Made by a program: the position numbers and the translations under genes
Assembly: GCA_024704765.1 (NCBI GenBank)
Contig: JAKMXF010000321.1
Coordinates: 310,001-374,000, forward strand
Origin: Oopsacas minuta
Lineage: Eukaryota > Animalia > Porifera
Direction of reading: 5' to 3'
Length of the DNA stretch: 64,000 nt
Shown: in pieces, positions 25,259-55,890 of the stretch
Numbering within the stretch: the stretch's first letter is position 1
Layout of the letters: every line of letters starts with the position of its first letter
The notes under the pieces: generated by a model
Databases searched by the model: none
What the model was told of the DNA's origin: nothing
The model's input: only the letters and a program-made list of their open reading frames with translations

Positions 25259-28200
25259 ATGATAGGTAGCGATGAGATTTCTTTGAAGATTCTTATGATC
25301 GGAGATAGTGGAGTTGGGAAATCTAGGTTCGTTATCTGCCACTGAATGTATTTACATATGTTTGTATGTTTGTTTATTGTTTGTAGTTTATTGTTGAGAT
25401 TTACAGATAACCATTATGACACAGATCAACCATCTACAATAGGTAATACTATACCGTCACCTCCCGTTATATCGAAGCTCAAAGGACCGCGTTAATTCCT
25501 TCGATATTACCGACTGAATTAATGTTACTTTGACGGTTTGGGACTATATTTGTGCAATTTCAGACTTGGATATAAGCGGGAGTTTGCTTTACTGTATATT
25601 CTATTTACAGCTCATTTAGTTGGAAAAAGCATTCCCAAATATCCAAATATCCACTTTTAGCACTACAAACTTTTCATAAATATATCTTCTAATTAATAAT
25701 AATATCCAAGATTCTAACTTTTCCTTGCTTGTGTAACTTTTTTCCAAATTCTAAAGCAAGTTAATTAGTTATGAATCATAGTAGCTGCCATAAAATATTA
25801 TATTAATCATATGTAATTCTCTAAGTAATACAAATATGATAAATTCTCCCTGATTATTTTATTATTTATTTCAATATAGGAGTTGATTACAAAGTTAGAT
25901 TGTGTGTCACTGACGGTCAGAAGGTTAAACTGAATATCTGGGTTAGTAGAATATTGTATTGCTGATTTCTGTAATCGTAATCTAAGCTATATGAAAGATG
26001 TTTTAGAGTAAAAGTACCTTTTACTTAAGAATACATAATCTCGTTTTCTTATTTGTTATTTCGACTAATACATGACTCTACCAATATTCGTACGTATAAA
26101 TATGAAGTATAAGAATTATAGACAATGATCTTATAATGGAGTTTATTGATGTATTATTTGATGGAGTTCTTGTGCTTATGAATCTAAGCTCATCTACACT
26201 ACTTTTCTTCTCGCTTTTTTGGCTATTGTTTCTCATATCTGAGTTGAAGCGTGTTTACCCTCTCTGGCAGTATCAAAGACGGCTATCCACACATGAGGGG
26301 AATCTTAAGGCAGTCGATTATAGGAATAATTTAGTAAAGAATTCGCTTGGGTTAATTTTCGTTGTTATTGAACTGATTACGTTCTCAATAGAGACATTAG
26401 AAGGAATTGCCCGTCGATTAATCATTGAAATCACAAACAAGGATATTTCTAATCCGTGTGTTCTGGTTGAGCAGAGTTATTTATGGTGGAATGTACAATA
26501 CTCAGTTATTAGAATCCTAGAAACGATAAGGCAGTCAGGAATGCTCTTATTACCAGCTGTATTAACTGTAATGGTTATGCATTTGCAGTCTATATACTCT
26601 GGATTTGATCGTAGAGTTAGTATTAAGAAATTTATAATACTAACTGTTGCCAGCTTGTTTGCATTACTAATTACTAAGAGTATGTTATCAACACTGCTTA
26701 TAGCTGAAACAATATATATGATAGCTCTTCCTATACTCTTCTATTTGTTAGTTAAAAATACTCATAGTTTGTATTCTAGCATGCAAAGACGTGTAGTTGA
26801 TATATCGCATGAAGGAAATAGTCATCGTATGTTGTATTTGAGAGAAAAACGATTAGTTAGAACTTTTAGATGGAAAATTATACCGATGTATACATCAGCT
26901 GGTATTGGTATATTCGGGCAAGTTTTATACGTGATGATATATGCAGGTGTTGGTTCTGTATTCATGAACAGCTGTTGGTTCGGTACACAATACAATATAC
27001 ACGTTAATGTGTCATATAATAATACTTTTACAGAAGCAACGGAATATTTTGTGTTCTTGTCACGGTTCTTGTATTTCTTGACTGGAAATTTGTTTCTATG
27101 GACTGTTATAATTGTGAATGTATGCATTCTTGTGGGTGTTCTCATTGAGAAGATGAGAGGTTGTTATCCAAGGCATTCTGTGAGTTTACAGGCTTGTCTT
27201 ATTGAAAATATCTAATGATTATTTGTATATTCAATTGATATTAATATCTCGAGTATAGTGTATACTTGTTCTATATAATGAGGGTTGTTTGGAATATTTT
27301 CAGTTTTTGCTTATTTGTTAAAAACCGATTCTATCAATACCAATACCAATATATACGTAATAGTCTCTTCTTCAAATAATCGATGAACTGATTAGAGACC
27401 GTTGAAACGTTACGTAACTACAAGGGGAGGGGTGGTATACGAAGTGACAGCCTCATTCTTTTTGTATTAGAAATGGTGAAAAAGCGTGACACAGGGATGG
27501 GGAGTAAAAATATATGTAATTTTGCGTACATAATGTTTAAACGGCCCTTACCGCTATATATTTCGAAAATACATTATGGCCTTACTCTAATAGTGAAATG
27601 CTTGCTGATAAAATCAGCTGCTAGAATACGTAATCTAAATTCACGCATTAGATGTATCCCTACTTTATAAGTGTAAGGTAATTGCTCAATCATGAAACGA
27701 GGTAGAAACATACAAAATATGCCAAGCACAGACATTAATTATTTCATCATACACAGTAATGTATCTTGCTCTTATTTAAATATCCCTACGGGGCTCTCTA
27801 TTATACAAGATCTAATGTTACACAACACATATATACGTCCTATATATATTGTAATATTATTGAGTAAAGGAAATGCCTGTAATAGACGATTCATTCGTTA
27901 TTCTAGGAAGAAAAATTTTCTCGTTTGTTTTCGAATTTAGTATACTTATATTGTTACTACTGTCTGTACAGTGGGTGTGTTACTTATATAGAGATTCAAA
28001 ATACGCATACCATACATGGAAGTACAAAATATCATGCTATACATTTGAGGAATGGATTGAGGGAAGGAATTTCAAACACCGCTATTATAAAAACATTTAT
28101 TTGATAATTTTCCTGTGTTCAGATATGATAATGTGTGTATCTCTTCTCCCACAAGCTGTTCTCCGTCTATTCGATATCACTCCGTTCCATTCTATCGGTA

Positions 28201-31200
28201 ATTGTACTTTTAAGAACTATTCTTGGTTACAGGAGTATTATAACGGGGGTCGTACTCTGTGGGTCCTGGAGAGTATCCGTCTGTCCAGTCTGGTATTGGA
28301 AACTGGTTTCTTCCAGCTAATCCTGTTGTATTTGATCGAAGTTTACACAACTGTTAATCAAAAGCCGATAAAATACCATCCAATATTCAAAAGATTGTCT
28401 CTCAACATTGTACTATCATTGCTGATATTTGTACTAAATTTAGACGATCATACATTCATGTTTGGCCAGATATTGTACGCGGTGGTTTTGCCAATTTATG
28501 CTGTAGTAACTATCAAATATGCTCGTAGACTTAGCATGGTATTAGGCTGGAGACATCAAGATGCTGAGTATATCTACTCGCAGAATAACGCGATATTGCT
28601 GAACGAAGAGAGAGTTATACTTAGATACAGGCGGACAATAGTACCGTTATATTTAACCTTATTAATAGTGTCTCTAGGTCAGGTCGTGTATATTATCGTG
28701 TATGTCCTAATAGATACGATATTACAAAATCCCTGCTGGTTTACTGAAATATACAGATTCAGTTATACGAATGCGAACACGCTTCTACCGAATGATTTAC
28801 AGTTTTATTGGACGTCAGCTGGCTTAGGAGCAAATGTAGTCTGGTTATCCACTGGTATGATATTTTTCTGGACAATTATTGTGGTGAATATTTACCATTT
28901 TGTGAGTGAGTTTTATCAAGAGTATAAAAGGAGGAAATTATTTAAAGACAGGGAATTAGTGAGGAGACTTATACCAAGCCAATAACAGATAAATAATAAT
29001 AATAGCATTGTGTTTTGTATTATTAAATAGTTTATGGATAAAATCGGATATTATTTTCGGACAGTGTTGGCTACCCAGCGCCTTTTATGTATGTATAGAC
29101 ATGACACACTCTAAATTTCATGAGGTATACCCTCTAGATTCCTGGAGGATGCATTTACAATATTAAATTTCCCTGAAGTTAGTTCTATAATGGATAAATA
29201 CGAGTATATCAGATACGAATACCCCCCCCTATTCTTTAGAGGAACACTGTCTTCTGATGTCATATCCCTCTTTGGGACAGGTATATAGATTCTGTGGGTT
29301 AAGATAATACGCCCGTTCTTGTAAAGTACGAGACATGCTCCATACTCATTAGAATTCTCCCCCCAGACTCTCTGCGAATTCCAAACACCCTTGTATTTAC
29401 TACGACTATTATAGATTTTTGGTCGTTTGTATTCCGACCTGTACACACATATGCGTGTATGTAATAAGTAATAATTAGCTATTTATTAGTTGCTGTATAA
29501 CTTTTGCTTATTAATATTATATTTACCTCTTCTTATGGTATTATGTCATTGGTTATATTAATTGTAGAAACACATTAACACAGACTAATGCTATCTTTAA
29601 TTAACCCTCGTGCCAGATACATTATGCTCATTTAAAATAATCTTATTATCCCTCCCCGTCCCTATTTTATTTCACTGTTTTAAACTCTGTAACTTCTACA
29701 AACAGGGCCTGTGGGAACGGATTGAAAAATAAAGAGCGAATTCCTAGTCCCATACAAATGAACCTTAATAATCGGAGAATTCGCAGAAACTGGAAATAAA
29801 TAATATTTTTCGGCGTCCCTGACACCTGTAATTGTGGAGGTTTTATTCCTATTTTTGTATTACAGATTGTTATAACGAGCTTTATTTAATAATACTAACA
29901 AATACTGCACAAATATATAACAAATGAATACTAATTAATTCCTTTTCCATTATTCAAGAGAGGTGCAATTATGTCATCACTCTCCTGCATAACACATCCA
30001 TCAGGATCTCTCTTCTTCGCTGCCTTTTCTTTCCTCCATTCTCTGAAGCTATAGACACACTGTACAATCAGTAAATACATCATGACTAGAAACCCGAGAA
30101 TCTGCCTAGATATATTCAGGAACTGTATCCAGTAACTACTATAATGCTCGAACTGGATATTAACCTGTTCTGCGATCTCGTAATTCCACGGGTAGGTCAC
30201 ATCCACCCAGCAATAGTTTACCACTGCTGTCTCTGCTATGATTGAAATTGCGAATATTATCTCGATTAGAATCATAATATGTACGAGACAAACCATCGGT
30301 ATGATGAATAGTTCATAGTGTAGTTTGTAACTAAGGCTAGCGTAATATTCACGAGATTTAAGATGGGCTAGATCTGCAATCTGTTTCCTCATTAAACAAT
30401 AAAACTGTATTAGACAAATGTCTATGATAAGTAAGTGAATAAGGATCAGGAATACGTATAGGGAGTGTCCAAAGAATATAGTTTCCAGCCAACAGTTGAG
30501 TAGAAAAACAGCAATAAATTCTAGGATCGCGATTATTGCAGTTACCTTCACCTGCCAGGTTAAAACACGCTTGTTGTTAGCATATTGTGCGGTTATCAAT
30601 TGTAAAAGGATTAATTCGAAGCTCGCCATGGCAAGTACTGCGAAAGGTTGCCATTGACTATGCAGAGCCCATCCGTACTCTATAGGTTCATTTATTTTGT
30701 TCCATAACCAGCTGTCATAGTGGATGCTACAATTTCCTACAGTCCTATCTGCTCTATCTGTATTATCAAATACATACACTACTCCACCGTTATGTATTGC
30801 CATGATAGGTATTAGCAGTAATAGAGTGCTAATGAATACCACACATAGGATATGTTTCGCGAATTCTTGCCTCAGTGCGTAGCCTGTATCCTCCTCACGG
30901 TATCCCCCTGTATGTGCCCTCCATGCTTTGTAGGATTTAGTTATCATACGTAAGAACTTCATCAACCAGCTGATCATTACGATAAATATTATAATTGCAC
31001 TTATCCATATAAGTCCAATGCTTATTATCGCTACAATATGTTGCCATGAGTGTACCATTTTGATTTGAATTACCAGTCAGAATACAGCCACTATTTATAT
31101 GTGCCTACTCATTAATAGAGAGGGAATAAGCCCAGTAGAATTTTACAAAATAATATATCAAGAAAAAGATTCATAAGCGAAATATACCTTTCAATAATTC

Positions 31201-34200
31201 TGTGAGCAAATGCTTACATTCAATAAATATTTGTGTTCTTTTCAAGAATTGAATGTTATTATTACAAAACCTTATTTTGTTTTTGAGGTATAAATTATTA
31301 AAATACATTACATAATGCTTTAGAATATTACTAAATGATTTTATGGAGGCTTTCACTTTTCTGGAAAGAGCTCTGCAAAATTTGAAAGTAAGCATGTATG
31401 TGGAATGTGATAAATTTAGAGACAACTCCACAACCTCTGAGATAGGTGTTATAATATCTTGACCTAGCAAATTTGAGGGTATCGATTAGAATAACATTGC
31501 ACTATCAGAGTTTTCGCGAGCCGCGCAGCTCAAGCATACGAAGTGTGCTTGTAATAATGATCCACACAGTACCTCGTTAATAACACGGTAAAGTAAATTT
31601 TCTGATAATGTGAACAAACCACTGTATTAATTATTTCTGTGTATGAGATGTTGGATACAGTGAAACCTCGAATTTCGGTTAAGAAGAACATAATTTTACA
31701 CAATTTCAGTCCATAAAATGGCTATTCAAATGTTTTTACTCCGAATAAGGAGTACAAATCTCGACGGTCCCTTGGTGTATGTATTAACGAGATTCTATTG
31801 TATGTGTTTTAACATAAGCCATGTTATGGGTGATACCGATAATCGCTGTATAAGTATACCCTAGCAATCTCTATTTATTCTTGCCCCTTGAGATTATATC
31901 CAAATTAGCTGAAACACAGAGTTAACTGAATTATATTACAAACATGGCAATCTTCCCAATAAAATAATATACACTATTATGAATGGATAATTACTTAATT
32001 AATTCATTGCCAGCCTCCATTTCTGTGACTGAGTGGAGTATTAATCTGTACGAACCCTGATGTCTTAGTACGTCTACACCTCATAACAACATGTATTAAC
32101 AGGATAACTACCTGGACAACCAAAATATACAATAGGTGTGCAGATATTGCCCAATCACGTACACATATTATTAAATACGTGACTAGCCTAAAAACGTGTG
32201 CGTTGATGTCAAATCTGTGAATTTTACATCCGTATACTTCTTCCAGCCAGCATGGGTTCAATAGGATAGTTTCACCGAAGACATTAACGACAGTAAACGC
32301 GATCAGTGTCAGCACGATGAACTGTAGTAAACACACATTCCAAATAGTCAACCATTTGTATCTGATTGTTACTTTGTCGAAAACGGTGAATTCTCTGCTC
32401 TCCTGGCTCATAAAATATGTCATGTCAATTTTATACCTTTTCAACCGTTGCCATAGTAACCACGAATAGTATATATTCAGAATCATATGGAATTGTAAAA
32501 AAATCGTGAATGCCAATCTCCCCAACAGCACAGTACATTTGAATATATTCAAGATGAAAATAGTCGCCATTTCTATTGGGATATAACTAGAGAATAGCTT
32601 TATGAGATTATTGTTATGTTGAGGTTCATGGCTGTATGTCTGTATAAGTACGAGGTATATCATATTGAAGATGGTCATTTCGGTAACTGCTAAGACTTGC
32701 CATAGAGATTCAATGATAGAAACTTCAGGGTGATTATGGTTTAACTTAAAGCTAAGCCAGGTAGATTCTTGGATTCGACATTTCTGCGATAACGTATCGT
32801 TCGGATGCAGATAGGACTTTTCGGTTTCAGCTATGATTCCGTCAATAAAGACAAACAACAACATCAACACGTCAACAATTAAAAACAAGAAAATAAGTAC
32901 ATTCTTGAAGTATGTGTTTCTATGAGACATTATCACATCAAAATACTCACTGTTATACTTGTAGTAATCTTTGTAGAATATCCATGAACGATATGACATT
33001 TTAACCTTCCCAGACATATAAATGAGCCATCCTAAACTAACCGCGAAGACCAGAAATGCAGTTACTCCCAGCGGAAACCCAGTTCCATAAAGGAGTACGT
33101 CATGAAAGACATGACTTTGATTCATACTCTATTCCTGTAGTTATTAACACAAATGTTTTTTATACATTTGATAGTTATATTTATGCATATTGTTACCAAA
33201 AGAGACAATATTTCTGTTAGCAGAATAATCTTTCTTAGTAATCGTAAGCTGAAACCAACTATTTTGTATTCCACATTACCTAATAGTACATTGAACTGCA
33301 AAGTAATACTTTTGGGAATTATAGTTTTGTATATGATAGATTAGGGAATGCTTATTGTTTACACAGCCCTCTATATTGGTACATGTACCTAGCACCAAAT
33401 AGGCTTAAAGGTATTGGTTCTAGTTAATGGATGCGATAAGTACTAAAAGTACAACGAAGGGAAGTTAATATTCGTTCGAGTTTTAACGGATGTTGATTGT
33501 ATGTACTATATACCTGGAAAATAGCCTTCTAAACGAAATTTAGACCCAATATGTAAGTAATCTTTGCTACAAATCATGAGTGTGGCTGTCCTTATGGTAG
33601 GTTGAAGTAGTCCACCTATTTACCTTACTGCATATGAATTGCCTTGTTGCCATAGTTACTATTATGTTACCCCAATGGTACCACTGATAAGCCATAAACA
33701 ACACAATTTAATAATGATCATCAATAACAACAAAATTTTCACAAAATGTACTACTCAAGCTAGGAGCGGTTTTTTCAAATTTTCAGTACACAGTCTCATC
33801 CGTATGAATTTATCTAACCTCCTTCTCCTGACATGTTCTGTTACTACAAAATAGGCATTCAGAACTAGAACTGAAATCAAGAATACTATCGCTGTCATAT
33901 CCCTTAATATAATACAAGTAAACGTTACGTATCTGTAGTAATTCTCTGCTTCATGGCTGATTGATATCTTTGTCTCTATCGGGAAATGGCGAATGAACCA
34001 ACAATTATTGAGGACTATAGTGCCAATCCATACATTACAAACTATGTAAGCAAATTCTGCGAAAATAAACAGAAAACTAACGAGCAATAGAATAATTATG
34101 GCTGATTTGTATAATTTGAAGTTGTATACGTCATTATTTTTCTGTATAGTGTCGAGTTCATCTTTCATGTCTGCTTGATACCATTTTAGTTTTTTGTAGA

Positions 34201-37200
34201 GTTCCATAGCATATTTTAAAGTTAGCCACCAATAAATGAGAGCTAGTATCCCAAATATTAACTGGCCAGTCATAATCATGTCAGGAGAGGTGTCAAAACA
34301 TAATAACAATAAAGTTTGTGGCACCATAATTACAAGGAATGTCATCTTTTCTTTCTTGAGCGAATAGTCACGTTTTTTCTTGTAACTAGCTAGCGACTGT
34401 GTGTAGATACATGTAAAGTATCTTAGAATTGAAATGAAAATACAAAATTCTGCCAAGACAGCGCTCTGCCAAATTCCCTCAAAATATGAAGACGAATGCT
34501 CTCTTTCGAATACGATTGAAGCGAGCCAAGTTTCGTTTCTAATTTTGCAATTTTCAGTTTTCAAGTCAATTGTTAGGTTACTGGAACTGATTAAATAAGT
34601 TGCAGACTCTGCGAAAGAGGCGACACACATAATCATATCAGCTATTAGTAGGGTAGAAATCAACGCACTTTTGTGAAAAAATACTTTTCGTTTCAGACCT
34701 TCGTGTCCCTCGTAAATATTCACTCTCCATTGTTTGTAATTATTCTTCGCTTGTTTTATAAAGTATGACAACCAAATTAGCGAAATTAGAATTACCATCG
34801 GTCCTGCAATCATTTGCATTCCAATTTCTATAACATAACTGTAATGCAGTATATGCGCTAATACACCCATTGTAATTCAAAATACAGAAATTGCAAATTT
34901 ATGTATTTATAACCTTTCTCTTTGTAATTCTTTGCGACGTCGTCAATGAATTATCTACCTACTTACAATCTTTAAACCAGCAATTAATTTGCTAGCTATT
35001 GATTACCTCCTAATATCTAATATTAGCTAAGATAACTTTACATTCTCAAAGGTTTTCAATACGACTAATCCTATGAGAATAATGAGATCAAAAGTTTAAC
35101 TATATACCATGGACAATACTTGAATGTTCCTTCGGTAATACGAAGTGTTTGCAAGCAGCACACCGCAAAATGTGATTCTATCCTTGAAATCAACAAATAA
35201 ACTTACATATGGATTGTATTTCATTGATTACATATCCTTACTAATTTTGAATTCCGAATTCAAACAAGCATACCATAACCTTTCCTCGACACAGACAAAG
35301 ACAAAATTGAGAATTACAACTATTAATTCAGAAAAGATAATTTATACAATTCCTCTATAATTCCCGAGCAGAGGTGTTGAGGATTTGAAATGTGTTCTAT
35401 ACACTCTCCTCTTAGAATTAATCTTATTACAGATTAATAACATATTCATAATTATCAGTGTAATCATTAACAGGCAAATTGCTACTGTCAAGTTTGTGGT
35501 AACAACTAGTTGAAGTATTGAGTATATATCCTCAGCTTTTGAGCTTATATTCAATGGGAATTGTATTCTGAACGTCTTCTCGACCCAGCAGTTATTTAGA
35601 AGAATAGTACCGACAAATTCTTTAACAAGCTCATCGATTATTTTCGATATTAACAGATATTGGCCTATTATGAAAATCGGCTTTATGAATAATCTGTATT
35701 GTCGTATTTGCTGTGAATGTGTCCTCAAATCGACAACGTCTATTCCATCCGCATGCTCTAGATCCTGTTGCCTCATTTTTAATTGTACGTTCAATTTCTT
35801 AGCGTAATGCACGCCTGCAAAAAACGCTACAATTAACACAATCGAGTTCAAGATCCAATCGATTAGAATTGTCCAGGGTAAGAATGTTGTTATGGCAACG
35901 AGAAGAGCAGGTAGGAATGTTACAAACAACCATAACACCTGTTTTGCGCTGTAAGCAAACCTTTCTTTGAACTTGTAAACATTATTGAAATACAATAATA
36001 TCAATAAAAACAGCAAAGTCACGTATACCACCAACCCCTTTCTAACTGCCATAGCTGATGCGAATACCTTCTCATATCTCAAATGTAGATAACTGCCCCC
36101 GTATAAACTGCAGTTATTAACGTAGATTGTGTTATTTTTAGAATGAGCGAGGTTAAACGAGAGTTCCGTAATCATGCTCACTACACATAGGCTTTCTATT
36201 AGGAGGTAAAAGGAAAATAATATACTTTTGAAAAATCGGTTTTTGTAGTTCAAAAGTCTCACTTCGCTCTCAGCATCACTTGGCCTTTGCTTTATATTAT
36301 TGATATCAGTTAATGTTGTCTTTAATTTAAGGAAGAAATGTATGATCCAAGAAACGGAAATCAACAAAAACAAGCAAAATATGCTTATAGTTACGTAACT
36401 AAATGCTTTGTAAACAACAAGAAGAATCATTTTTATTTCCAATGAATAGTTTTGAATATTTTTATACTATTCTTTAGATTACCTGTCATCTGTGTAATGC
36501 AATTTATCGGGGAAAAGAATTTGATAATTTTTCTGATTTTGTGAAGCTCATTTCTACTTTTATGGTAGTGTGATTACCTAAATCTACCTGCTATTCATCT
36601 TTGATAAGAATTCTTAAATACCTTTCCTTACAATATGATTATTTGTGATATTATATCCCTTCGTAAGTAGAATAATCTAATATTTTGATTATTTCTGAGT
36701 CATTCACAGCAATAATTGTCTAACATAGTTTCTTTCAATGATTGTTAAGCAAACTGAGTTAACTGTAAATTCCTATATTATAATTCTGTGTGTTGAAATC
36801 TTACGGCCTTGATTGTGCACTTTGTCGCCAATTTATTCCAAATTGTAATTCTATTATTTACCGAATACTTCTGGGAAATTGTGTGATTTTAGGACGTCGA
36901 AAAGGTGCTAAAATCTCGTTTTTGGTGCGGGAATTGGTTAAAACGAAGTGGTGCTCCTTTTCATTACAAATGTAACACTTCTCCCGTAATCGGTTAATAG
37001 AATTATTTAATTAAGATCCTAAGGAGCGCATTATCTCCAAAGCTCTAACAATTATCCTCATTTAACAATTTAATATATTTTTACTAAGCACATTTCGCAT
37101 TTTTGAGCTTTGCGGCTTGCGAACACTTGTACATTCAATTTACCCAAAACATTTGTCACCTTTCTCAGAAAGATTGAGAGAAATCGCTTAGTATTGCGAG

Positions 37201-40200
37201 TTATTCTTAGCCTTATCATTCCGCGTACATACATGCTGAATTTCAAGTTTACCAGTCTTTCAATTAATTCAGTATGCGCCTCGACTTCAATCAGGTTTTC
37301 TAAACCTGATTGAAGTTCAGTGACATGTGTATACTTTCAGAATTTGCATTATGTCTCAAAACTCAAATATCACATTTTGATTCTAATACAGCCAATGGAC
37401 CATTTTACCTATTTTCTAATTAGATATACGCGCTCATTTCTATATCCGTGTTTGTTATACAGGTAATTGATATGTAAACTAATAAGTAATATATCCACAA
37501 TTAACGTGATAGCATCTTAAGACTTATTCAATTGGGAAATATACTATTGCCTTACAGGTATATTCTATGATTACAGATTATGTGTAATCTATATTACATA
37601 ATTATGAAAATTTATACAAAACATTATCAAATATATTATTTATACAATTCAGATATTAACAAAGGTGTGAAGTTATGTATTACAATTGTTATTTGCAATT
37701 TGTATGAACTATTCCAGCATTTTAACCTCATACTTTTCCTATTTATAAGGTTAGAAAGATTTTCTAGGGAAATTTAAATGTGATTTGTCCCTTTGATTTA
37801 TACTTTAGGCTTACAACCTTGAAACTTATTTAAATAGATGTATGTAACACAATCTGTTATATAAGAAATTTGATCAACAATGGATTCTAATTCTACACAC
37901 CATTTCCCTGTAATCTCTAACTATCATTTCACAAGTGTCTTGCTACGTATTTTATTGACAATTAACATTTTCGTTATTTTCATATGGATCACGTATTTAT
38001 TCAAATTGCTGGTGATTCAAATCGTTCGCTATTTCAAGATTGCAAAGTCGAATTTTCCAGGTTCTAATGATTATGAGGAACAGTATAGAGTAAAGGTAGA
38101 TATTTTAAAATACAGTTTTGTAATAGGATGTTTTACTTGCGAGCTATTTAGCGAAATGTTCGGGTTTTCGGCAGGAGAAGTTGTGAGAGCCTATCCCATA
38201 ACAGGCTTCACACCCTTTCGTCTCTCTAACTCATGTGAATTGCTGCCAGTCGGCTGGCTATATAGACTCTACCAATTTCCAATCGCTTACCGGATATTTC
38301 ATGCCCTTTGGTGCTGCTTCACGATTCTAGCAATTTCCCTCTTTTTGTGGTTGTTTCATATTTTGACGAAAGTATATCGGAAATCTCTGAACCAAATCAG
38401 ATACGTTTTTCCAATAATCATCCTGACGTTGTCTGTCCTTATAAATTTCATTCTGTCAGTTGTGCTTCAAACTGTTGTGTTTGGTAACATTCTATACTGC
38501 CTTTTCGTTGTCATGCTGTATATAGCTGTTATAATAGAAGTGAGACGTTTTGGTCGAGTTTTGGAAGAAATCCGAAATGGATCAATCTTAAATGTTGAGA
38601 ACAGTTTTGAAAAGGAATATTATATGATTAAACTCTCTCACGACAAGCGGACAATCAGAAAATACGGAACAGTAGTTAGTCTAATCCTATTCTTACTGGG
38701 TCTTGATTTATTCTCTCAATCCATATACATCATTTTCAATGTATTCATATATTCAATACTGATTAATCCGTGTTGGTTCAAGCATGTGTATGGAATACCT
38801 CTCAATTTCCAACTCACCTCGCATACGATAGATAACTTAGAGCTATCAGCTGATTACCTAATACTCTTCCGGGATATCATGTCAGGGTGCTACTTCTTCG
38901 GATTTATTTGTTTTAATACCGGAATGTTAATAATACCAATTATGCATTCTGTGTTCAAAAAACTAAGCAAAACAAGAGAAATTGAAGTAAATGATTTGAA
39001 GGAAAAGTTGTTACAATAATTTCAATGCTATGCTGTTCGTTATTAATATTACTTACATTATAATATGCTAATTTTCCTTTAAGAATATATACAAATATTT
39101 TATTCATAAATATCCATTGAGAGCAAGTCTATTATGATAATTCTAAGATTTTAATTATTTGTTTACTTTATATTCATAAAAACAACATTAAACTTACATA
39201 TGATGAAGTTTAAGATGTGAAGTTTGGGTACAAACATACATACAAGCAACAATTGAATTTAATAATTCGTATAGTAATAATAATTATACAAGTAAAGGTT
39301 GTTTGAGTTGAGGTTTGTACAGACATCTACACACTTTAGAAGTTCTAATTTCTATCAAAATTCTGTCATAAACGATCGAACAGAAATACAAAACACTCAA
39401 CACACTCAAATACCCAATCACCAGTAATCCAGTAACTGTTCTAATCATCCACACTATATAGCAAGCTTTGTAGAAGATCTCTTTATCAAATTCAAGATTA
39501 GAGATTTGTAAATTGAAATTATAGTTTATCCAACAGCTGTTTAGTAAAAATGTTTGTAATACTAGAACTATAGTGAAGTATAGGAAACAACTTAGTATGT
39601 ATGCTTGGAAGAAAACGGATAACACTAACTGTGCTTTTCTCATTTGGATGCACTTTTTATGGTATTTTAGAGGGAAATCGTGTTCATTTGAGTATTCAAA
39701 ATCTTTAATTTGCCATGTAATCAGCATGAAGAGTCTCTTAAAATCTCTCAAACAGTGTACTATTAAGAATTGTATGATGAAAAGCGAGAATCCAAATCCT
39801 ATTGCAAATGATTGACTGAAGGAGCAAAGTATTAATACGATGGGTAACGTAATGCATAGAAATAGTTTAGAAAATATTTGTTTTTGACGTAATTTCTCTT
39901 TCATAAATGCAGCTTTTAGGTGTAGAACAGTCAATCGTATCAAAATGAGCTCAAATATGTATAATGTCTGTCTTAAACCTTCTAAAAGCCAATTCACATA
40001 GCTCACCTTTTCAAAATCATACAACCAACTATTTTTATCCAATTCACAGTTCGGGGCAATCGTCAAATTAGCCTTATTAGACTTCCAAACAGTTGCGAAC
40101 AGGTTCTGTATTGTGAACACGGTAAGGCTATTCCCTACCTCAACTAATACGATTGATAGCAGCAATATATTCCTTATTAGAGCAGTCTTGCTATTAATGT

Positions 40201-41318
40201 ATCCTATTGTATTACTGCTGTGTAGTTGATATCTCCATGTATGGTATGACTTCTTTATTTGTGAAACACAATAAACGACCCAACCCAATAATACAACAAT
40301 AAAGAGAGGAGTGTAGCCCCACATAGCGAAGTCTGTAATAAACCCGGATAATCTCACGTGACTACTCGACATTGTAATATTTATTAAATCAATACTGCAC
40401 CAGTTTTTATAGTCACAACCAGGAGAAAAATGACGTATATTTATTTGTTTTGTTTACATCAACAATACAACTATTAAATATTACTTATGATCCAAAAGAC
40501 ATGAACCACAACTCTGTGCAATCGTGATTACTGGTCTTTTATGGTTACTTTCAGCTCAATCCCTTTAAATGTTTTGTAATATAGTTTAGTAGAAATATTT
40601 TGTCAACTATATTGCTTACAACACAGTTTATGAAAGCATAGATGTAATACAAGAAATTAAGTATAATTTTGTAATAGGACACTGCTGGTCAGGAAAGGTT
40701 CAGAACTTTAACGCCCTCATACTACAGGGGAGCACATGGTGTTATAATTGGTGAGTAATTACTCATATATTCACACCTTTTCGGTATATCTTATGATTGT
40801 TTACTTGTTGTTCTATTCAAGTTTACGACACAACTTGCGTAGAGTCATTTAACAGTCTACAGACGTGGTACAACGAGATGGGAACGTATTGTACTAATCC
40901 AGATGGTGTAACGATGTTGGTTGGCAACAAGACTGACAGAAAGGTATGCAACTGTTTATTGAAACAAAAAGCAGTTATATTGGTATACTCTATAGGCGGA
41001 GAAGGCTATTACGAGAGAACAGGGCCTGCAATTTGCTAGAAGACACTCTATGCTGTTTATTGAGACAAGGTTAGTATGCTAGCCAAAAATATTATATGTT
41101 CTTCGAGGGAAATTTGAAAAAGTGTTTTGTGAGTATATTGTATGTAATTTAGTGCGAAACTGAATGAACATGTTCAAGTAGCCTTTGAAGAGCTTGTACG
41201 TAAAATCCTACAAACACCTACTCTAATCACAGCTGTTAAAGATAAATATGCTCCCCTCACTATGCCAGACTTAGAGGATTCCAGCGGACAACAGGCCAGT
41301 TGTTCCTACATATGTTAA
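25259..41318 (+). CDS. RAB18: Rab18 small GTPase, 7 exons
   Basis: Exons 25259-25326, 25387-25442, 25880-25941, 40678-40750, 40822-40943, 40996-41069, 41153-41318 are all GT-AG and phase-consistent. They give [98 protein letters not shown]. Confidence 0.95.
25452..25596. mobile_element. MITE family A in RAB18 intron 2
   Basis: taccgtcacctcccgttatatcgaagctc, family core ttgacggtttgggactatattt, right end ...tttactgta. Confidence 0.75.
26095..26102 (+). promoter_or_regulatory. TATA box of nested 7TM gene 1
   Basis: TATAAATA, first T 41 nt before the ATG at 26136; the same spacing recurs in paralogues. Confidence 0.45.
26136..27215 (+). CDS. Orphan 7TM receptor-like protein 1 (nested in RAB18 intron 3), 359 aa
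   Basis: Seven hydrophobic segments; ECL1 NPCVLVEQSYLW, ECL3 MNSCWF; basic ICL1 and ICL3. Confidence 0.85.
   Translation: MEFIDVLFDGVLVLMNLSSSTLLFFSLFWLLFLISELKRVYPLWQYQRRLSTHEGNLKAVDYRNNLVKNSLGLIFVVIELITFSIETLEGIARRLIIEITNKDISNPCVLVEQSYLWWNVQYSVIRILETIRQSGMLLLPAVLTVMVMHLQSIYSGFDRRVSIKKFIILTVASLFALLITKSMLSTLLIAETIYMIALPILFYLLVKNTHSLYSSMQRRVVDISHEGNSHRMLYLREKRLVRTFRWKIIPMYTSAGIGIFGQVLYVMIYAGVGSVFMNSCWFGTQYNIHVNVSYNNTFTEATEYFVFLSRFLYFLTGNLFLWTVIIVNVCILVGVLIEKMRGCYPRHSVSLQACLIENI
27873..28985 (+). CDS. Orphan 7TM receptor-like protein 2 (nested), 370 aa
   Basis: Seven TM segments; GNCTFKNYSWL, QNPCWF. Confidence 0.85.
   Translation: MPVIDDSFVILGRKIFSFVFEFSILILLLLSVQWVCYLYRDSKYAYHTWKYKISCYTFEEWIEGRNFKHRYYKNIYLIIFLCSDMIMCVSLLPQAVLRLFDITPFHSIGNCTFKNYSWLQEYYNGGRTLWVLESIRLSSLVLETGFFQLILLYLIEVYTTVNQKPIKYHPIFKRLSLNIVLSLLIFVLNLDDHTFMFGQILYAVVLPIYAVVTIKYARRLSMVLGWRHQDAEYIYSQNNAILLNEERVILRYRRTIVPLYLTLLIVSLGQVVYIIVYVLIDTILQNPCWFTEIYRFSYTNANTLLPNDLQFYWTSAGLGANVVWLSTGMIFFWTIIVVNIYHFVSEFYQEYKRRKLFKDRELVRRLIPSQ
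29697..29860. mobile_element. MITE family B, degenerate copy between 7TM genes
   Basis: gggcctgtgggaacggattgaaaaataaagagcgaattcctagtccc resembles the 49685 and 63349 copies. Confidence 0.6.
29931..31058 (-). CDS. Orphan 7TM receptor-like protein 3 (nested), 375 aa
   Basis: Seven TM segments; GNCSIHYDSWL, VNYCWV; C-terminal APLL. Confidence 0.85.
   Translation of the reverse strand: MVHSWQHIVAIISIGLIWISAIIIFIVMISWLMKFLRMITKSYKAWRAHTGGYREEDTGYALRQEFAKHILCVVFISTLLLLIPIMAIHNGGVVYVFDNTDRADRTVGNCSIHYDSWLWNKINEPIEYGWALHSQWQPFAVLAMASFELILLQLITAQYANNKRVLTWQVKVTAIIAILEFIAVFLLNCWLETIFFGHSLYVFLILIHLLIIDICLIQFYCLMRKQIADLAHLKSREYYASLSYKLHYELFIIPMVCLVHIMILIEIIFAISIIAETAVVNYCWVDVTYPWNYEIAEQVNIQFEHYSSYWIQFLNISRQILGFLVMMYLLIVQCVYSFREWRKEKAAKKRDPDGCVMQESDDIIAPLLNNGKGIN
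31092..31099 (-). promoter_or_regulatory. TATA box of 7TM gene 3
   Basis: TATAAATA on the minus strand, first T 41 nt before the ATG. Confidence 0.45.
31657..31802. mobile_element. Degenerate CAGT-ended TIR element
   Basis: tacagtgaaacctcg ... cgagattctattgta imperfect inverted ends with TA flanks. Confidence 0.5.
32004..33125 (-). CDS. Orphan 7TM receptor-like protein 4 (nested), 373 aa
   Basis: Seven TM segments; QKCRIQESTWL, LNPCWL. Confidence 0.85.
   Translation of the reverse strand: MNQSHVFHDVLLYGTGFPLGVTAFLVFAVSLGWLIYMSGKVKMSYRSWIFYKDYYKYNSEYFDVIMSHRNTYFKNVLIFLFLIVDVLMLLFVFIDGIIAETEKSYLHPNDTLSQKCRIQESTWLSFKLNHNHPEVSIIESLWQVLAVTEMTIFNMIYLVLIQTYSHEPQHNNNLIKLFSSYIPIEMATIFILNIFKCTVLLGRLAFTIFLQFHMILNIYYSWLLWQRLKRYKIDMTYFMSQESREFTVFDKVTIRYKWLTIWNVCLLQFIVLTLIAFTVVNVFGETILLNPCWLEEVYGCKIHRFDINAHVFRLVTYLIICVRDWAISAHLLYILVVQVVILLIHVVMRCRRTKTSGFVQINTPLSHRNGGWQ
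33755..34870 (-). CDS. Orphan 7TM receptor-like protein 5 (nested), 371 aa
   Basis: Seven TM segments; ENCKIRNETWL, LNNCWF; C-terminal KPLLA. Confidence 0.85.
   Translation of the reverse strand: MGVLAHILHYSYVIEIGMQMIAGPMVILISLIWLSYFIKQAKNNYKQWRVNIYEGHEGLKRKVFFHKSALISTLLIADMIMCVASFAESATYLISSSNLTIDLKTENCKIRNETWLASIVFEREHSSSYFEGIWQSAVLAEFCIFISILRYFTCIYTQSLASYKKKRDYSLKKEKMTFLVIMVPQTLLLLCFDTSPDMIMTGQLIFGILALIYWWLTLKYAMELYKKLKWYQADMKDELDTIQKNNDVYNFKLYKSAIIILLLVSFLFIFAEFAYIVCNVWIGTIVLNNCWFIRHFPIETKISISHEAENYYRYVTFTCIILRDMTAIVFLISVLVLNAYFVVTEHVRRRRLDKFIRMRLCTENLKKPLLA
34904..34911 (-). promoter_or_regulatory. TATA box of 7TM gene 5
   Basis: TATAAATA on the minus strand, first T 41 nt before the ATG. 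Confidence 0.45.
35342..36430 (-). CDS. Orphan 7TM receptor-like protein 6 (nested); first ATG at 36430 (the ORF track starts at a TTG, 36442)
   Basis: Seven TM segments; NNCSLYGGSYL, LNNCWV; C-terminal TPLL. Confidence 0.85.
   Translation of the reverse strand: MILLVVYKAFSYVTISIFCLFLLISVSWIIHFFLKLKTTLTDINNIKQRPSDAESEVRLLNYKNRFFKSILFSFYLLIESLCVVSMITELSFNLAHSKNNTIYVNNCSLYGGSYLHLRYEKVFASAMAVRKGLVVYVTLLFLLILLYFNNVYKFKERFAYSAKQVLWLFVTFLPALLVAITTFLPWTILIDWILNSIVLIVAFFAGVHYAKKLNVQLKMRQQDLEHADGIDVVDLRTHSQQIRQYRLFIKPIFIIGQYLLISKIIDELVKEFVGTILLNNCWVEKTFRIQFPLNISSKAEDIYSILQLVVTTNLTVAICLLMITLIIMNMLLICNKINSKRRVYRTHFKSSTPLLGNYRGIV
37880..39019 (+). CDS. Orphan 7TM receptor-like protein 7 (nested), 379 aa
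   Basis: Seven TM segments; NSCELLPVGWL, INPCWF; ends EKLLQ. Confidence 0.85.
   Translation: MDSNSTHHFPVISNYHFTSVLLRILLTINIFVIFIWITYLFKLLVIQIVRYFKIAKSNFPGSNDYEEQYRVKVDILKYSFVIGCFTCELFSEMFGFSAGEVVRAYPITGFTPFRLSNSCELLPVGWLYRLYQFPIAYRIFHALWCCFTILAISLFLWLFHILTKVYRKSLNQIRYVFPIIILTLSVLINFILSVVLQTVVFGNILYCLFVVMLYIAVIIEVRRFGRVLEEIRNGSILNVENSFEKEYYMIKLSHDKRTIRKYGTVVSLILFLLGLDLFSQSIYIIFNVFIYSILINPCWFKHVYGIPLNFQLTSHTIDNLELSADYLILFRDIMSGCYFFGFICFNTGMLIIPIMHSVFKKLSKTREIEVNDLKEKLLQ
39284..40372 (-). CDS. Orphan 7TM receptor-like protein 8 (nested), 362 aa
   Basis: Seven TM segments; PNCELDKNSWL, LNSCWI; ends QPLLV. Confidence 0.85.
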   Translation of the reverse strand: MSSSHVRLSGFITDFAMWGYTPLFIVVLLGWVVYCVSQIKKSYHTWRYQLHSSNTIGYINSKTALIRNILLLSIVLVEVGNSLTVFTIQNLFATVWKSNKANLTIAPNCELDKNSWLYDFEKVSYVNWLLEGLRQTLYIFELILIRLTVLHLKAAFMKEKLRQKQIFSKLFLCITLPIVLILCSFSQSFAIGFGFSLFIIQFLIVHCLRDFKRLFMLITWQIKDFEYSNEHDFPLKYHKKCIQMRKAQLVLSVFFQAYILSCFLYFTIVLVLQTFLLNSCWINYNFNLQISNLEFDKEIFYKACYIVWMIRTVTGLLVIGYLSVLSVLYFCSIVYDRILIEIRTSKVCRCLYKPQLKQPLLV

Positions 41319-41820: not shown

Positions 41821-41936
41821 TCCAATTCAAGTAAGCTACCATTGACTAAATTTGGGAAATATTCCATCTAGTAAATTACAAAATACTAATCATTGCAAAT
41901 GTAATCAGTGGTTTGTTATCGTAGACAGATTGCGTA

Positions 41937-44084: not shown

Positions 44085-47000
44085 ATGGATTTAGCTCAGA
44101 GTTTAACTTTTGTAAATTTTGTTGGAACTCTTGCTATAGTATTCACAGTAGCTGTGTTTTTATCAGGAATGTGAGTAACTGTTAATCACATTTTGACACC
44201 TATTATTATTATTATTGTTATTGTTTATTGTTTAGTGAAGTGTGTCAAGAGATAAGACAGAAATATGGTGTAGATAATATTAGTTTTTTTCCCTTTTTAG
44301 CAATATTTTTAAAGTGAGTTATTTGTTTGTTTGTTTGTTTGTTGTTACTTGTTTACTCTCATCTAGTTGTTCGTTATGGCTGTTATACGGTAGACTAGTA
44401 GGAGATAACTTCATCATTGGCGTCAATATAATTGGAGCAGTATTATCAGGCTCATATCTTATATTCTATTTTCAATATGCACTCGGAACACAAAAGGTTA
44501 GTACAGTAATTTACAATTAATATTAATATAAGAATCATGTAGAATTGTGTGATCAGAAACTAGCTATTTTGAATAATTATAGTCCTTACCTGTTGTCACA
44601 TCGTTTCCTAATCACATCAAACTTCTCCTATAGACATGGTTCATATTAGTGGTTGGTTTTGGACTGATAATGTTAATAGCTAAGATTTGGTTTGCTCTGT
44701 ACTACATACAAGATGCTGATCACAGGAAGCAGGTATCTTCTCTATACTGCTTTGCTTCTACTGTTATGATGTTTGGATCTCCATTAGTTTCTGCAGTAAG
44801 TTGTATTGCATTGCTGGGATATGGAATGTTTGTATCTAACCTACCGAAAATCGTGGCAATTCCGTTTGTTGGCACGTTGGTACCACTAAATGATCCCGGA
44901 AGGTTATTTTCGTCAATTATCACAATATTTTGCTGGTTTGGCAAATGGTCCCTATATGCTTATTAGTTATTAACCATGGACAATGGGTTTAATTTATATG
45001 CTTGGATGTTCTTCCTAGCTATCTTGAGGCACTCCTCGCTTTATTGGAGGGGATTTGTATATAATATAAAATAAATAAATCCGCTATCCATGGTTATGTA
45101 ATAAAATATAGAAACTATTTTGTCAAAACTACATTCGGCAGTTTGATACTTAATATTCCCGAAAAATCTGAATTTCAGATTATTGTTTGTTATATCTGAC
45201 TTTAACAGTACAGAGTAATACAGAATAAGACCACAGAAGGAATGTCATTCACCTTAACAGTTACCAGTCTAGGTTGTTCATCTCTATGGACAGTTTATGG
45301 AATGATGTTAGGAGACAGCACTGTTGAGGTATTTATTTAATATATTTTCTACTCCTGACTAGCTGTTGAGAGATTTTGTATACTTTCGACAGAGATTTGG
45401 TTACATAAATAATTCCTGTCTCTGATAGATCAAATTAATCTCATTAAAAACCGGTTTTATCGAATACCCGAAGTTTGAAATTGCCCAATTATGCTCCCCA
45501 CACCGTCAAAGTAACAAAAATTCAATCGGTCATATCGAAATAATTATCGCGGTCCCTTGAGCTTCGATAGAACAGTTGTCTGTATTATAAATTAGTTAAA
45601 GAAGGGAACTAAGTAATATTTACAACAACAAACTATAAATCTAATCTGACATACTCGATTTGAATGTCTTATTTACCAAACTAAGTTCTCTCGCTATTAA
45701 TTCATTAATTCCAAATACCCATCAACTTGTAAATCTCTTCAATCAGTTCTGAGTACTTCTCATTCTGAACATTGGAGGCTGTAGCGTGTTCACATGGATT
45801 GTCAAAATAATGTTTATCCCTTGGTATTTCTAATTCTACAAGACTTGTTACGTTATGGTGAATGCTCGAGCTAGATGCGAGTGTAGAGAAATCCTTAAGT
45901 CCTTGCTTTTCACTACCATTCCAGACTATATTCATTATTGTATTGGGTGTCGGTTGTCCAATTAGTCCTTGACAAATGCTATTACTTCCAGGTTTCGGTT
46001 CTACCCCTGGTTCTGGATATATGGTGAATAACCTTTTGAGTACTTTTGAAGTTGGTAGAATTTGTCCTGCAGGAACACTTGAACAATTTCCTAATTGTCC
46101 ATGCACTTTCTGTAATCTGTACTGCTTGCCGTACTTTGTTAAACTCCAGAACCAACCCTCCAATACCTCTTCCCCAGTTAAACCTTTATTAACTCTGATT
46201 GTAGAATTAACAAATTTCATGCTTGATTGGGGATTATCAGATATGTAGTCTGTTGCTTCGGTCATAATACCGATTAATGAGTAATATTCATTTGCTTCTT
46301 GCTTATTAAAGGAAGATCCAAAGAAAGTGGTATTCAGAACAAAGCTGTCTAAACCAGTTGCTTTACAAGATAGATCTTGTCCTGAAATGCTTACAATTAA
46401 TGCGAAGAGAATTACTAAATATTTCATTCTGTAGATTTTGAGTTAACTTCTTAATCGTTCGTATAAATATCATCTAGCTATACCTAGTCTACAAATCACG
46501 TGTGATATATGATACTATTAATTATCAATAATTCCCTGAAGCTAACTTAAGTTGGGTCGAATCTCTAGACAGATAGTTTGGACTCAAAATAGTGGCTAGC
46601 TACTTGCTAGGTAAATTTCAATTCACAAACATAGTTACACGTTTAATCAATTGGCATTTTAATAATTTGGGGAGATAAGGAACCATTTTTTTGCATTCTA
46701 ATTAACCTATGTTAGTTAGAGCCTAAAATATGATTGGGCGTACATACACTCGGACTTGAAGCTCAATTATGGTCCAAGACCAGATATGTCAGAGACATTC
46801 ATGGCTACAATAACCATACAAACTACTGATCCATTTCTCCCAACTATCCGCGCTTGGTCCACACAGGACCATGTCAATCAAATATAAAACACAGTCGTTG
46901 AAATACCATCAGGGCATCATCAATATCCAACCGGAGGGTATTTCAAGCAAATCAGAACGACAGGTAAGTTCTACGAGGTTCTTCCAGGTCTTAACGGTGA

Positions 47001-49684: not shown

Positions 49685-49825
49685 TATAGTGTAACCTCCG
49701 CAAACTGGGCCTCTGGAAACGGAGTGAAAATAAATAGAGCAAATTCCTAGTCCAATTCAAATGAACAACCATAAACGGGAAAGGGGTTAGCATTTATCGG
49801 TATTCCTGACAGAAGTTACACTGTA
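49685..49825. mobile_element. MITE family B
   Basis: tatagtgtaacct ... aagttacactgta inverted ends; partial duplicate at about 50218-50265. Confidence 0.75.
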
Positions 49826-54771: not shown

Positions 54772-55890
54772 ATGGAAGATCAAAGACCAGCTATCTATGA
54801 AAAATTCTACCAATCCGCTTCACGAGTATTAACTTGGATAGAATTCGCTCCTTTACCATTCACAATCACATGCTCTATCATTTGGATAATAACCTCCATC
54901 CATCTCTTATGCAAGAGGGACTATAACGGAACGCCGAGTCAGCATAGGAAATCATTGAGACTGCATTACGTCACAGCTCTACATAGACAACGTATTGTTC
55001 AATACGCATTGTTACTGATCGCAGTATCAAGCATATGTACTGATTTAACATTAACAGCCATAACTGCATACAAAGCGCAGTCACTGCTTAAGCCAACTAA
55101 CAATAGCAATAACAATAGCAATACTACCAGATGTCACATAGAAACAGGTCAGTGGGGTCATTTAGATGGCTATAAATGGTTGTACATCTCTTGGCTCGTT
55201 CCAATGACAATATTTGCACAAGCATACTACTGGAGCATTGCTTTAATCCCGATAACAACTAAATCATACTTCAACACTAAGCCAAGCCAAAAGCATTTCA
55301 TCTTCGTTGCTGTCTACATACTCATACGCGATATTTTCATGGCCATTTTGTGGATAAATCCTTTTACTATTCCATTGGGAATAATAACCAGCATTATAAC
55401 TACTGTATTAGACTGGGTACTGATAATGTACTATTTCTATACAGGCTATCGTGTAGCTAAAAATAGCATAGAGGCTATTCTAAAAGGGGCAGATGATAGG
55501 GAAGGAATTGATAGCAATTTCATACCCAAATTGAGAACTCTATTCACCGCTTTTTGCATTGTATTCTCTATCATAATGGTATCTGTGTTGCAGGCGTTTC
55601 TAATAGGGTTCGTATTACCAATGATTGTCTATCCAAATTGCTGGTTAAAACTGCTCTATTCGAGTTCTGTTGATGATAGTTGGACCTTCGGAAAGGATCA
55701 TGTAACAGCCTTTACTATTATTCAAATGATTTCAATGCTGGAAATTCGCGTGGTGATTTGTATATGGAGAGTAGTGTTTATAGCACTTAGTGTATTCGCG
55801 TTTATTTTAATAATCAAATTTAAAATGAAACAGAAAGAAGGAAGGAAATTGAAGAGAAAAGCTGTGAAAGAAACCACTCGACTTCTCTGA
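54772..55890 (+). CDS. Orphan 7TM receptor-like protein 9 (solo, divergent), 372 aa
   Basis: Seven TM segments; ECL1 TRCHIETGQW with N-glycan sequons, ECL3 YPNCWL, ends ETTRLL. Confidence 0.82.
   Translation: MEDQRPAIYEKFYQSASRVLTWIEFAPLPFTITCSIIWIITSIHLLCKRDYNGTPSQHRKSLRLHYVTALHRQRIVQYALLLIAVSSICTDLTLTAITAYKAQSLLKPTNNSNNNSNTTRCHIETGQWGHLDGYKWLYISWLVPMTIFAQAYYWSIALIPITTKSYFNTKPSQKHFIFVAVYILIRDIFMAILWINPFTIPLGIITSIITTVLDWVLIMYYFYTGYRVAKNSIEAILKGADDREGIDSNFIPKLRTLFTAFCIVFSIIMVSVLQAFLIGFVLPMIVYPNCWLKLLYSSSVDDSWTFGKDHVTAFTIIQMISMLEIRVVICIWRVVFIALSVFAFILIIKFKMKQKEGRKLKRKAVKETTRLL

Follow-up and report, generated by a model that had tools for sequence, protein, structure and literature searches.

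What kind of proteins do nine intact, intronless and highly divergent genes encode in a stretch of the genome of Oopsacas minuta, a glass sponge? The stretch, called the window here, is 64,000 nucleotides in length (positions 310,001 to 374,000 of contig JAKMXF010000321.1 in assembly GCA_024704765.1). A first reading, made from the sequence only, had described the genes as an unrecognised family of seven-helix receptors and as a candidate chemoreceptor repertoire, and had remarked that this would be of interest if the host lacked neurons; the source, a glass sponge, is indeed such a host. The analysis reported here leads me to propose, with a probability of roughly 60%, that the genes belong to a glass-sponge family of receptors with the fold of the G-protein-coupled receptors (GPCRs), in which the first extracellular loop (ECL1) would form a lid, the outer pocket would be variable, and a conserved cytoplasmic face would serve a shared transducer.

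The list of open reading frames (ORFs) contains nine paralogues of 359-379 amino acid residues (aa), all intact and intronless, at the following positions (L003 is an orthologous locus in another assembly, and handles beginning with P denote other members).

26136..27215, + strand: gene 1, 359 aa; intact ORF; family HMM E-value 4e-75; orthologues elsewhere 46-52% identical.
27873..28985, + strand: gene 2, 370 aa; intact ORF; HMM E-value 2e-76; L003 orthologue 62% identical.
29931..31058, - strand: gene 3, 375 aa; intact ORF; the best supported transcript of the nine.
32004..33125, - strand: gene 4, 373 aa; ORF and HMM; L003 orthologue 52% identical.
33755..34870, - strand: gene 5, 371 aa; ORF and HMM; the member modelled with AlphaFold; orthologues 46-61% identical, on contigs of seven different lengths.
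35342..36430, - strand: gene 6, 362 aa from the first ATG; ORF and HMM; L003 orthologue 57% identical.
37880..39019, + strand: gene 7, 379 aa; ORF and HMM; in an orthogroup with P0019 and P0024.
39284..40372, - strand: gene 8, 362 aa; ORF and HMM; in an orthogroup with P0014 and P0022.
54772..55890, + strand: gene 9, 372 aa; the most divergent, outside the array; HMM E-value 2e-42; in an orthogroup with P0007, P0026 and P0032.

When a profile hidden Markov model (HMM) of the family was run against the six-frame translation of the whole window, exactly nine members were found, as the sequence-only reading had counted, and no fragments or pseudogenes of the family. The start codon of gene 6 is most likely the ATG at 36430 rather than the TTG at 36442 given in the ORF list. 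Some public protein models are shorter at the N-terminus than the ORFs (286 versus 370 aa for gene 2, 354 versus 371 aa for gene 5, and 277 versus 362 aa for gene 6). The 286- and 277-aa models of genes 2 and 6 are too short to hold all seven helices, and the public model P0009 (286 aa) is a truncated gene 2.

The pairwise identity among the nine proteins is 15-22%, and their alignment spans the full length. Four residues are invariant in all nine (W29, C108, C280, and W281 in the numbering of gene 1). Most of the shared motifs that had been noticed at the outset occur in seven to nine of the genes. The C-x6-[WY]-L motif of ECL1, the N-x-C-W motif after the sixth transmembrane helix (TM6), and an Asp within the cytoplasmic stretch between TM5 and TM6 are each present in 8/9 genes, while the C-W pair alone is found in 9/9. 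An acidic residue in TM2 and a Tyr closing TM3 are each found in seven. The E/H-x-x-[WR]-Q motif at the top of TM3 fared less well, being exact in only five of the nine.

Is this a known family? Searches of Pfam gave only scattered noise and no family for the nine genes (E<=10) or for 110 relatives (E<=0.1). The family profile HMM found no GPCR among all the sequences of the PDB at E<=10; a designed helical protein (E = 0.003) and a channel (E = 6) were matched, and both were rejected as compositional. The family is not described in the glass-sponge genome papers (PMC10280926, PMC10282587). A 2025 survey of GPCR families that included the O. minuta proteome used families derived from choanoflagellates and does not cover it, and no description was found in the broader literature.

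The fold is more telling. An AlphaFold model of gene 5, made with a 137-sequence alignment, has a predicted local distance difference test score (pLDDT) of 91 and a predicted template-modelling score (pTM) of 0.90. It consists of seven long helices with a beta-hairpin in the TM2-TM3 loop, namely ECL1, and with a TM4-TM5 loop of four residues. TM5 and TM6 are prolonged on the cytoplasmic side as a helical hairpin with a two-residue turn. The model thus agrees with the expected helix count of seven and with the very short TM4-TM5 loop. It differs on two other points of the sequence-only reading: what was called a long basic loop between TM5 and TM6 is modelled as cytoplasmic extensions of the two helices plus the two-residue turn, and the acidic residue assigned to the late part of TM2 is placed in the middle of that helix.

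The model was compared with 48,161 PDB representatives by VIA-align, a method independent of Foldseek. All of the best 50 matches were GPCRs (50/50), and class A came first. The Z score was 19.5 for CX3CR1 and 18.4 for both GPR55 and P2Y1 (17-19.5 for the class A receptors of the delta group among the best matches), with 264-278 residues superposed at 3.5-4 Å across all seven helices, whereas the scores of an adhesion receptor and a Frizzled structure were about 15.8 and 15.9, respectively. Foldseek gave weak template-modelling scores (0.4-0.5); the PDB matches listed were GPCRs, and GPCRs accounted for 29 of the 30 matches in the Swiss-Prot part of the AlphaFold database (AFDB) and for most of the named AFDB-cluster matches. 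A shape search of the Atlas returned GPCR families in 8 of 10 rows, with scores of 0.52-0.62 for clusters of 7tm_1, 7tm_2, and 7tm_3. PAQR proteins and transporter folds were dropped on the grounds of topology and fold matches. Judging from the model, what is new is the sequence family, while the fold is the one known from GPCRs. The family may thus rightly be called unrecognised in that neither Pfam nor the sequences of solved structures match it, while its predicted fold is a canonical GPCR fold closest to class A. The N-terminal domains of class B and adhesion receptors (HRM/GAIN), class C (Venus-flytrap), and class F (Frizzled CRD) are all absent, as only about 10-25 residues precede TM1 and no Pfam domain was found there.

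Which way does the protein lie in the membrane, and which residues are kept? Topology and conservation were counted in the 137-member alignment, for which the numbering of gene 5 is used. The mean number of Lys and Arg residues per sequence is 6.2, 1.9, and 5.0 in the first, second, and third intracellular loops (ICL1-ICL3) and 5.2 in the C-terminal tail, about 18 in total, while the extracellular parts have about 5 (0.7 in the N-terminus, 2.6 in ECL1, 0.07 in ECL2, and 1.8 in ECL3). The sequons for N-glycosylation are concentrated in ECL1, at 1.2 per sequence, and also occur in the N-terminus and ECL3. Because of these distributions, an N-out, C-in topology is predicted, as had been proposed for the nine genes. 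It has been considered, too, whether the proteins might be seven-transmembrane ion channels (7TMICs) of the insect OR/GR kind or have some other non-GPCR seven-helix fold, given their helix count of seven and the lack of G-protein motifs. However, the orientation predicted from the positive-inside rule and the sequons is opposite to that of 7TMICs, and all top structural matches were GPCRs with no 7TMIC among them, so that this explanation is extremely improbable.

The conserved residues cluster on the cytoplasmic face, which in GPCRs is where transducers bind. A Glu or Asp in the middle of TM2 (E78) is found in 131 of the 137 members, the Trp of TM1 (W33) in 121, and a Lys or Arg at the start of TM2 (K/R67) in 118. 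Y151, L152, and Y156 are conserved at the cytoplasmic end of TM3, where the Tyr position is Y in 88 and F in 18 of the 137 sequences. Also conserved are R231 and D234 in the extension of TM5, Y254 and K255 where TM6 starts, N288-x-C290 right after TM6, and a P-L-[LI] motif at the C-terminus. In the same alignment, DRY, CWxP, and NPxxY are absent, TM6 has no conserved Pro or Trp, and no position of TM7 exceeds 45% consensus.

In GPCR classes A, B, C, and F, the second extracellular loop (ECL2) serves as a lid and as a disulfide partner. Here ECL2 has 2-4 residues, the TM3-ECL2 disulfide is absent, and the conserved Cys residues lie in ECL1 and ECL3. The lack of DRY, NPxxY, and the TM3-ECL2 disulfide had already been pointed out for the nine genes, and it extends to the model and to the whole alignment. 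C108 in the ECL1 hairpin and C290 in ECL3 are each present in 125/137 members (about 91%). Counting any Cys, 124 members have at least one in both loops, nine have none in either, and four have one in a single loop; exactly one in ECL1 and one in ECL3 was found in 109/137. The two conserved Cys residues noticed in the window are thus a property of the family, and their distribution suggests that they tend to be lost together. The Fisher p-value of 6e-11 for their co-occurrence is not independent evidence. Mapped on the tree, the changes number six for the ECL1 Cys and five for the ECL3 Cys. Since ECL2 is too short to provide a lid or a Cys, the ECL1 hairpin tied to ECL3 is its likely substitute.

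May the family simply be a very divergent offshoot of class A, the rhodopsin-like receptors, in which the signal of the sequence has worn away, as it has in numerous orphan rhodopsin groups confined to one lineage? The best structures belong to the delta group (CX3CR1, GPR55, P2Y1, and GPR34, with Z scores of 17-19.5 against about 15.8-15.9 for Frizzled and adhesion receptors), and the nearly invariant acidic residue in the middle of TM2 (131/137) recalls D2.50. The likeness to the delta group, which comprises chemokine, P2Y, and lipid receptors, also includes a seven-helix N-out bundle superposed best over about 270 residues, the buried position of the TM2 acidic residue, a length of about 360 aa, and a short N-terminus. 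On the other hand, no 7tm_1 match was obtained with the nine genes (E<=10) or the 110 relatives (E<=0.1), the family profile finds no GPCR sequence in the PDB at E<=10, and the Z scores of other classes are not far behind, considering that the structure is a helical bundle. Unlike the delta group, the sponge family shows no detectable sequence similarity to it, has no DRY, CWxP, NPxxY, or TM3-ECL2 disulfide, and has an ECL2 of only 2-4 residues. The Cys of its ECL1 hairpin is conserved together with one at the beginning of ECL3, and its TM5 and TM6 have long cytoplasmic helical extensions. A class A offshoot is therefore possible but on the whole doubtful, and a glass-sponge family of its own within the GPCR fold is preferred.

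How far does the family extend? I performed an exhaustive profile search over 1.84 billion representative proteins. It gave 193 clusters at E<=1e-3, of which 65 reach E<=1e-10; nearly all have a length of 340-415 aa. A word-indexed homologue search, done in two runs, gave at least 8-9 close orthologues. Twenty profile matches were traced to their sources, and all 20 lack a functional name; one is from O. minuta and the rest are from unannotated ENA or Logan assemblies. One family member is annotated as 'hypothetical protein LOD99_9462 [Oopsacas minuta]'. Every traceable source was either O. minuta or an assembly that shares the glass-sponge microsynteny of the window, and no match named as coming from any other taxon was found among the matches traced. 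As far as traced, the family occurs only in glass sponges (Hexactinellida). Since further members were found outside the window, the family of O. minuta is larger than nine: two lie at 10001-11131 and 16762-17922 of the locus L006 (JAKMXF010000033.1), and another is P0130 (KAI6646111.1). These extra members are dispersed among kinase and FERM genes.

In the window, exons 3 and 4 of a Rab18-like gene are separated by a 14.7-kb intron in which genes 1-8 are nested. The exons of the host gene are as follows.

25259-25323, 25384-25445, and 25876-25942, + strand: exons 1-3 of the Rab18-like gene, from translations and the RNA run X4.
About 40678-40750 and 40821-40940, + strand: exons 4-5 of the Rab18-like gene, from translations with the G3 (DTAGQE) and G4 (NKxD) GTPase motifs.

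The coding sequence is split between NIW and DTAGQE, so that exon 4 opens with DTAGQE. Is this arrangement common in glass sponges? Eleven loci of six assemblies were compared (O. minuta, ERZ25766962, 'BUSC20-1' with three samples, ERZ25071281, ERZ20067936, and ERZ25072740). The BUSC20-1 samples may be from Vazella pourtalesii, as a shared BioProject (PRJNA613976) suggests. In all five assemblies other than O. minuta (L003, L007/L008, L009, L010, and L011), the array follows CHD1, a STX17-like gene, and Rab18 exons 1-3, its genes are intact, and their order and orientation are those of the window. Because Rab18 exons 1-3 lie directly upstream of the gene 1 orthologue in these five as well (L003, L007, L009, L010, and L011), the nesting is old. 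By BLASTP, genes 1-6 correspond one-to-one and collinearly to L003 at 46-62% identity, and in L010 all eight array members are intact. The orthologue of gene 3 in L009 had looked like a pseudogene, being called as 287 + 72 aa, and this was rejected, as the frame is open for 372 aa. In the family tree, each gene of the window falls into a well-supported orthogroup of 2-5 sequences. Transposase ORFs of the Tc1/mariner type (DDE_3) were also seen at two loci, inside the orthologous array of L010 (8031-8927) and beside a tandem array of four family genes in L005 (11857-12951).

The sequence-only reading took intronless, clustered, and divergent genes as the genomic sign of a chemoreceptor expansion. 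This argument finds no support here, since most genes of this genome have a single exon and the array is intact and in the same order in five other assemblies. According to the A. vastus genome paper (PMC10282587), 9,872 of 16,340 O. minuta genes are single-exon genes, and glass sponges have many nested genes and extensive microsynteny. Thus, being intronless and nested is normal in this genome. A related explanation is that the family is a chemoreceptor repertoire whose genes are rapidly born and lost, as in the odorant receptor arrays of nematodes or vertebrates. It would account for the tandem arrays, the strong divergence, the faster evolution of the outer faces (see below), and the lineage-specific tandem copies found elsewhere, namely four members in a row in L005 and near-identical copies on one contig in some clusters. 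However, the orthologues are 1:1 and collinear in all six assemblies compared and there are no pseudogenes, the dN/dS ratios of 0.15-0.23 indicate clear constraint, and the lack of introns is not diagnostic where single-exon genes are in the majority (PMC10282587). I regard rapid birth and death as unlikely; the eight genes of the cluster would be receptor subtypes of long standing, distinct from one another, and not a fast-turnover repertoire. A further comparison is offered by the serpentine Sr families of nematodes and the orphan rhodopsins of platyhelminths. Like the sponge family, these are confined to one animal lineage, lie in tandem arrays, are highly divergent, and are recognisable mostly by fold or by family-specific HMMs. 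In contrast, they have Pfam models or residual 7tm_1 similarity, of which the sponge family has neither, and the sponge array has been kept 1:1 across species without turnover.

The strength of selection was estimated from a closer pair of assemblies, L007 versus L009, by the Nei-Gojobori method. No ratio can be computed between the window and L003, as synonymous sites are saturated (proportions of synonymous and nonsynonymous differences of 0.78-0.93 and 0.22-0.35, respectively); between these two, CHD1 is 75% identical. The ratios of nonsynonymous to synonymous substitution rates (dN/dS) for L007 versus L009 are as follows.

Gene 1: dN/dS 0.23.
Gene 2: dN/dS 0.19.
Gene 4: dN/dS 0.19.
Gene 5: dN/dS 0.15.
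CHD1: dN/dS 0.04.
STX17-like gene: dN/dS 0.08.

The family genes are under purifying selection, yet they evolve several times faster than their neighbours. The changes are unevenly distributed. Within the helices, the inner halves vary less than the outer ones (entropy 3.02 versus 3.30, p = 7e-4), and orthologues differ at 51.5% of the sites in the outer loops versus 41% in the cytoplasmic loops.

Are the genes transcribed? Four sequencing runs of one sample were examined over a 6-kb stretch and in bulk contigs. Three of them have a flat depth and behave as DNA, while the remaining one, X4, is RNA: in it, the Rab18-like gene has its 60-nt GT..AG intron (25324-25383) spliced out, exon ends are seen at 25876 and 25942, and part of the intron after the 60-nt intron has zero depth. 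In X4, the transcript of gene 3 forms a contig covering 30007-31106 at a depth of 270, compared with about 26 on the adjoining sequence. Lack of transcription, named at the outset as a refuting outcome, was thus not observed for gene 3. The 5′ end of this transcript adds one feature.

31059..31106, - strand: 5′ untranslated region of gene 3, bounded by a splice acceptor (AG at 31106-31105), from the RNA contig and the genomic sequence.

At this acceptor, which lies 47 nt ahead of the ATG, the RNA contig leaves the genomic sequence and carries 23 further nt that have no counterpart in the window. The genomic sequence at the contig end has a pyrimidine-rich tract and then AG. An upstream exon was considered as the source of the 23-nt extension and was rejected, as no copy of the 23-mer occurs in the window when two mismatches are allowed. 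Spliced-leader trans-splicing is known in glass sponges (PMC10282587). Given the acceptor, the 23 nt from outside the window, and this precedent, a spliced leader fits the 5′ end best and is the probable source of the extension. Genes 1 and 2 have a depth of about 26x, in contigs that continue unbroken from Rab18 exon 3 on the + strand (25913-29762). Such coverage may also mean that a read-through or polycistronic precursor yields the nested genes of the same strand.

How might such a protein work? I propose the following. With ECL2, the TM4-TM5 loop, shrunk to 2-4 residues, the glycosylated beta-hairpin of ECL1 would lie over the helix bundle in its place. A putative disulfide between the ECL1 Cys and the Cys just after TM6, in ECL3, would staple the hairpin. 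The most variable parts, namely the outer loops and the outer half of each helix, would form the ligand site. The signal might then be relayed to one shared cytoplasmic partner by conserved residues: the Glu in the middle of TM2, the Tyr that closes TM3, the Arg and Asp of the TM5 extension, and the Tyr-Lys pair with which TM6 begins. This partner would most plausibly be a heterotrimeric G protein; O. minuta is reported to have eight G-alpha genes (PMC10280926). Trafficking may be directed by the C-terminal P-L-[LI] motif.

Several points weigh against this proposal. The results above show the fold, the topology, the breadth and conserved synteny of the family, purifying selection, and transcription of at least gene 3, whereas G-protein coupling, ligand sensing and binding, and a location at the cell surface are all inferred. 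Without the class A micro-switches and a conserved TM7, the activation mechanism must differ from that of class A. The joint loss of the two Cys residues is suggestive but involves too few events to be significant: in six independent contrasts, the ECL3 Cys changed in the same direction in 3-4 and in the opposite direction in 0-1 (p = 0.125-0.6). The coverage of genes 1 and 2 may come from their own mRNA or from read-through of the host gene, the two being indistinguishable. Finally, two observations favour another kind of protein. GPR137, TOM1-THH1, and TPRA1 are GPCR-shaped proteins of lysosome or vacuole membranes, and the sponge proteins might likewise be endomembrane proteins acting in trafficking or nutrient signalling rather than sensors of outside ligands. 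In a comparison of protein-language-model features, the neighbours of two paralogues of about 23% identity agree with each other, with scores of 0.88-0.92 and up to 177 shared features; they are an oomycete cluster of 371 aa, THH1/TOM1/TOM3, GPR137_N, and PRRT3, and the THH1/TOM1/TOM3 and GPR137 kinds are placed nearest, at 0.91-0.92. In addition, the conserved C-terminal P-L-[LI] resembles a dileucine sorting signal.

Several findings speak against such a role. Feature scores of 0.9 or more arise in 4-10% of shuffled proteins, and P-L-[LI] has no acidic residue at -4, unlike the classical [DE]xxxL[LI] signal. No match to PF06454 or PF27607 was obtained at any threshold tried, and no such protein appeared in the Atlas shape search, in the top 30 AFDB matches, or in the top 50 PDB matches. 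The GPR137, THH1-TOM1-TOM3, and TPRA1 proteins do share the length and the seven-helix layout with the sponge family, and are the nearest language-model neighbours of the two paralogues. In contrast, they have no HMM match to the sponge family, are not among its nearest structures, and usually exist in one to a few copies per genome with no multi-gene arrays. Dozens of divergent paralogues whose outer faces evolve faster fit ligand recognition better. An endomembrane role is thus quite unlikely, and GPCR-fold receptors with an ECL1 lid remain my preferred reading.

The genes that flank the family in the window are housekeeping genes of the usual animal kind (CHD1, a DAK kinase, an AIF-like gene, IST1, PFKFB, and an RBR ligase). 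An interspersed repeat of about 130 bp lies at 25452-25580, with copies at 8571-8704, 15586-15643, 24088-24201, 41605-41792, 45471-45573, 56455-56565, 60638-60767, and 60804-60930. The copies are 74-86% identical. Because its k-mer depth in the DNA runs is about 75x that of single-copy sequence, the repeat resembles a short interspersed nuclear element (SINE) or a miniature inverted-repeat transposable element (MITE). A second short interspersed repeat lies at 29701-29800, with copies at 9621-9707 and 49703-49766. Its depth in the DNA runs is 8-20x single copy, and positions 29733 and 29765 are branch points of many contigs.

What would such receptors mean for a glass sponge? Glass sponges coordinate the whole body via electrically conducting syncytia, without neurons. 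A bolder version of the proposal, which I put forward tentatively as a real possibility but would not bet on, is that the family is a separate GPCR class born in glass sponges. In it, a disulfide-stapled ECL1 lid would have replaced ECL2, and the TM2 Glu and the TM5/TM6 stalk would stand in for DRY and NPxxY. Its dozens of members might then be the main receptors of chemical or mechanical input in a syncytial, neuron-less animal that conducts action potentials. Published analyses of glass-sponge genomes list few conventional signalling receptors, and that of O. minuta found no monoamine receptors and no ionotropic glutamate receptors (PMC10280926). The members are at present annotated just as 'hypothetical protein', and the eight G-alpha genes are possible partners. 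A conserved multi-gene family with the GPCR fold is thus a concrete candidate for how glass sponges sense their surroundings. It also offers a natural case in which the fold is kept without the ECL2 lid and the class A micro-switches, and which may tell which features of the fold are truly required.

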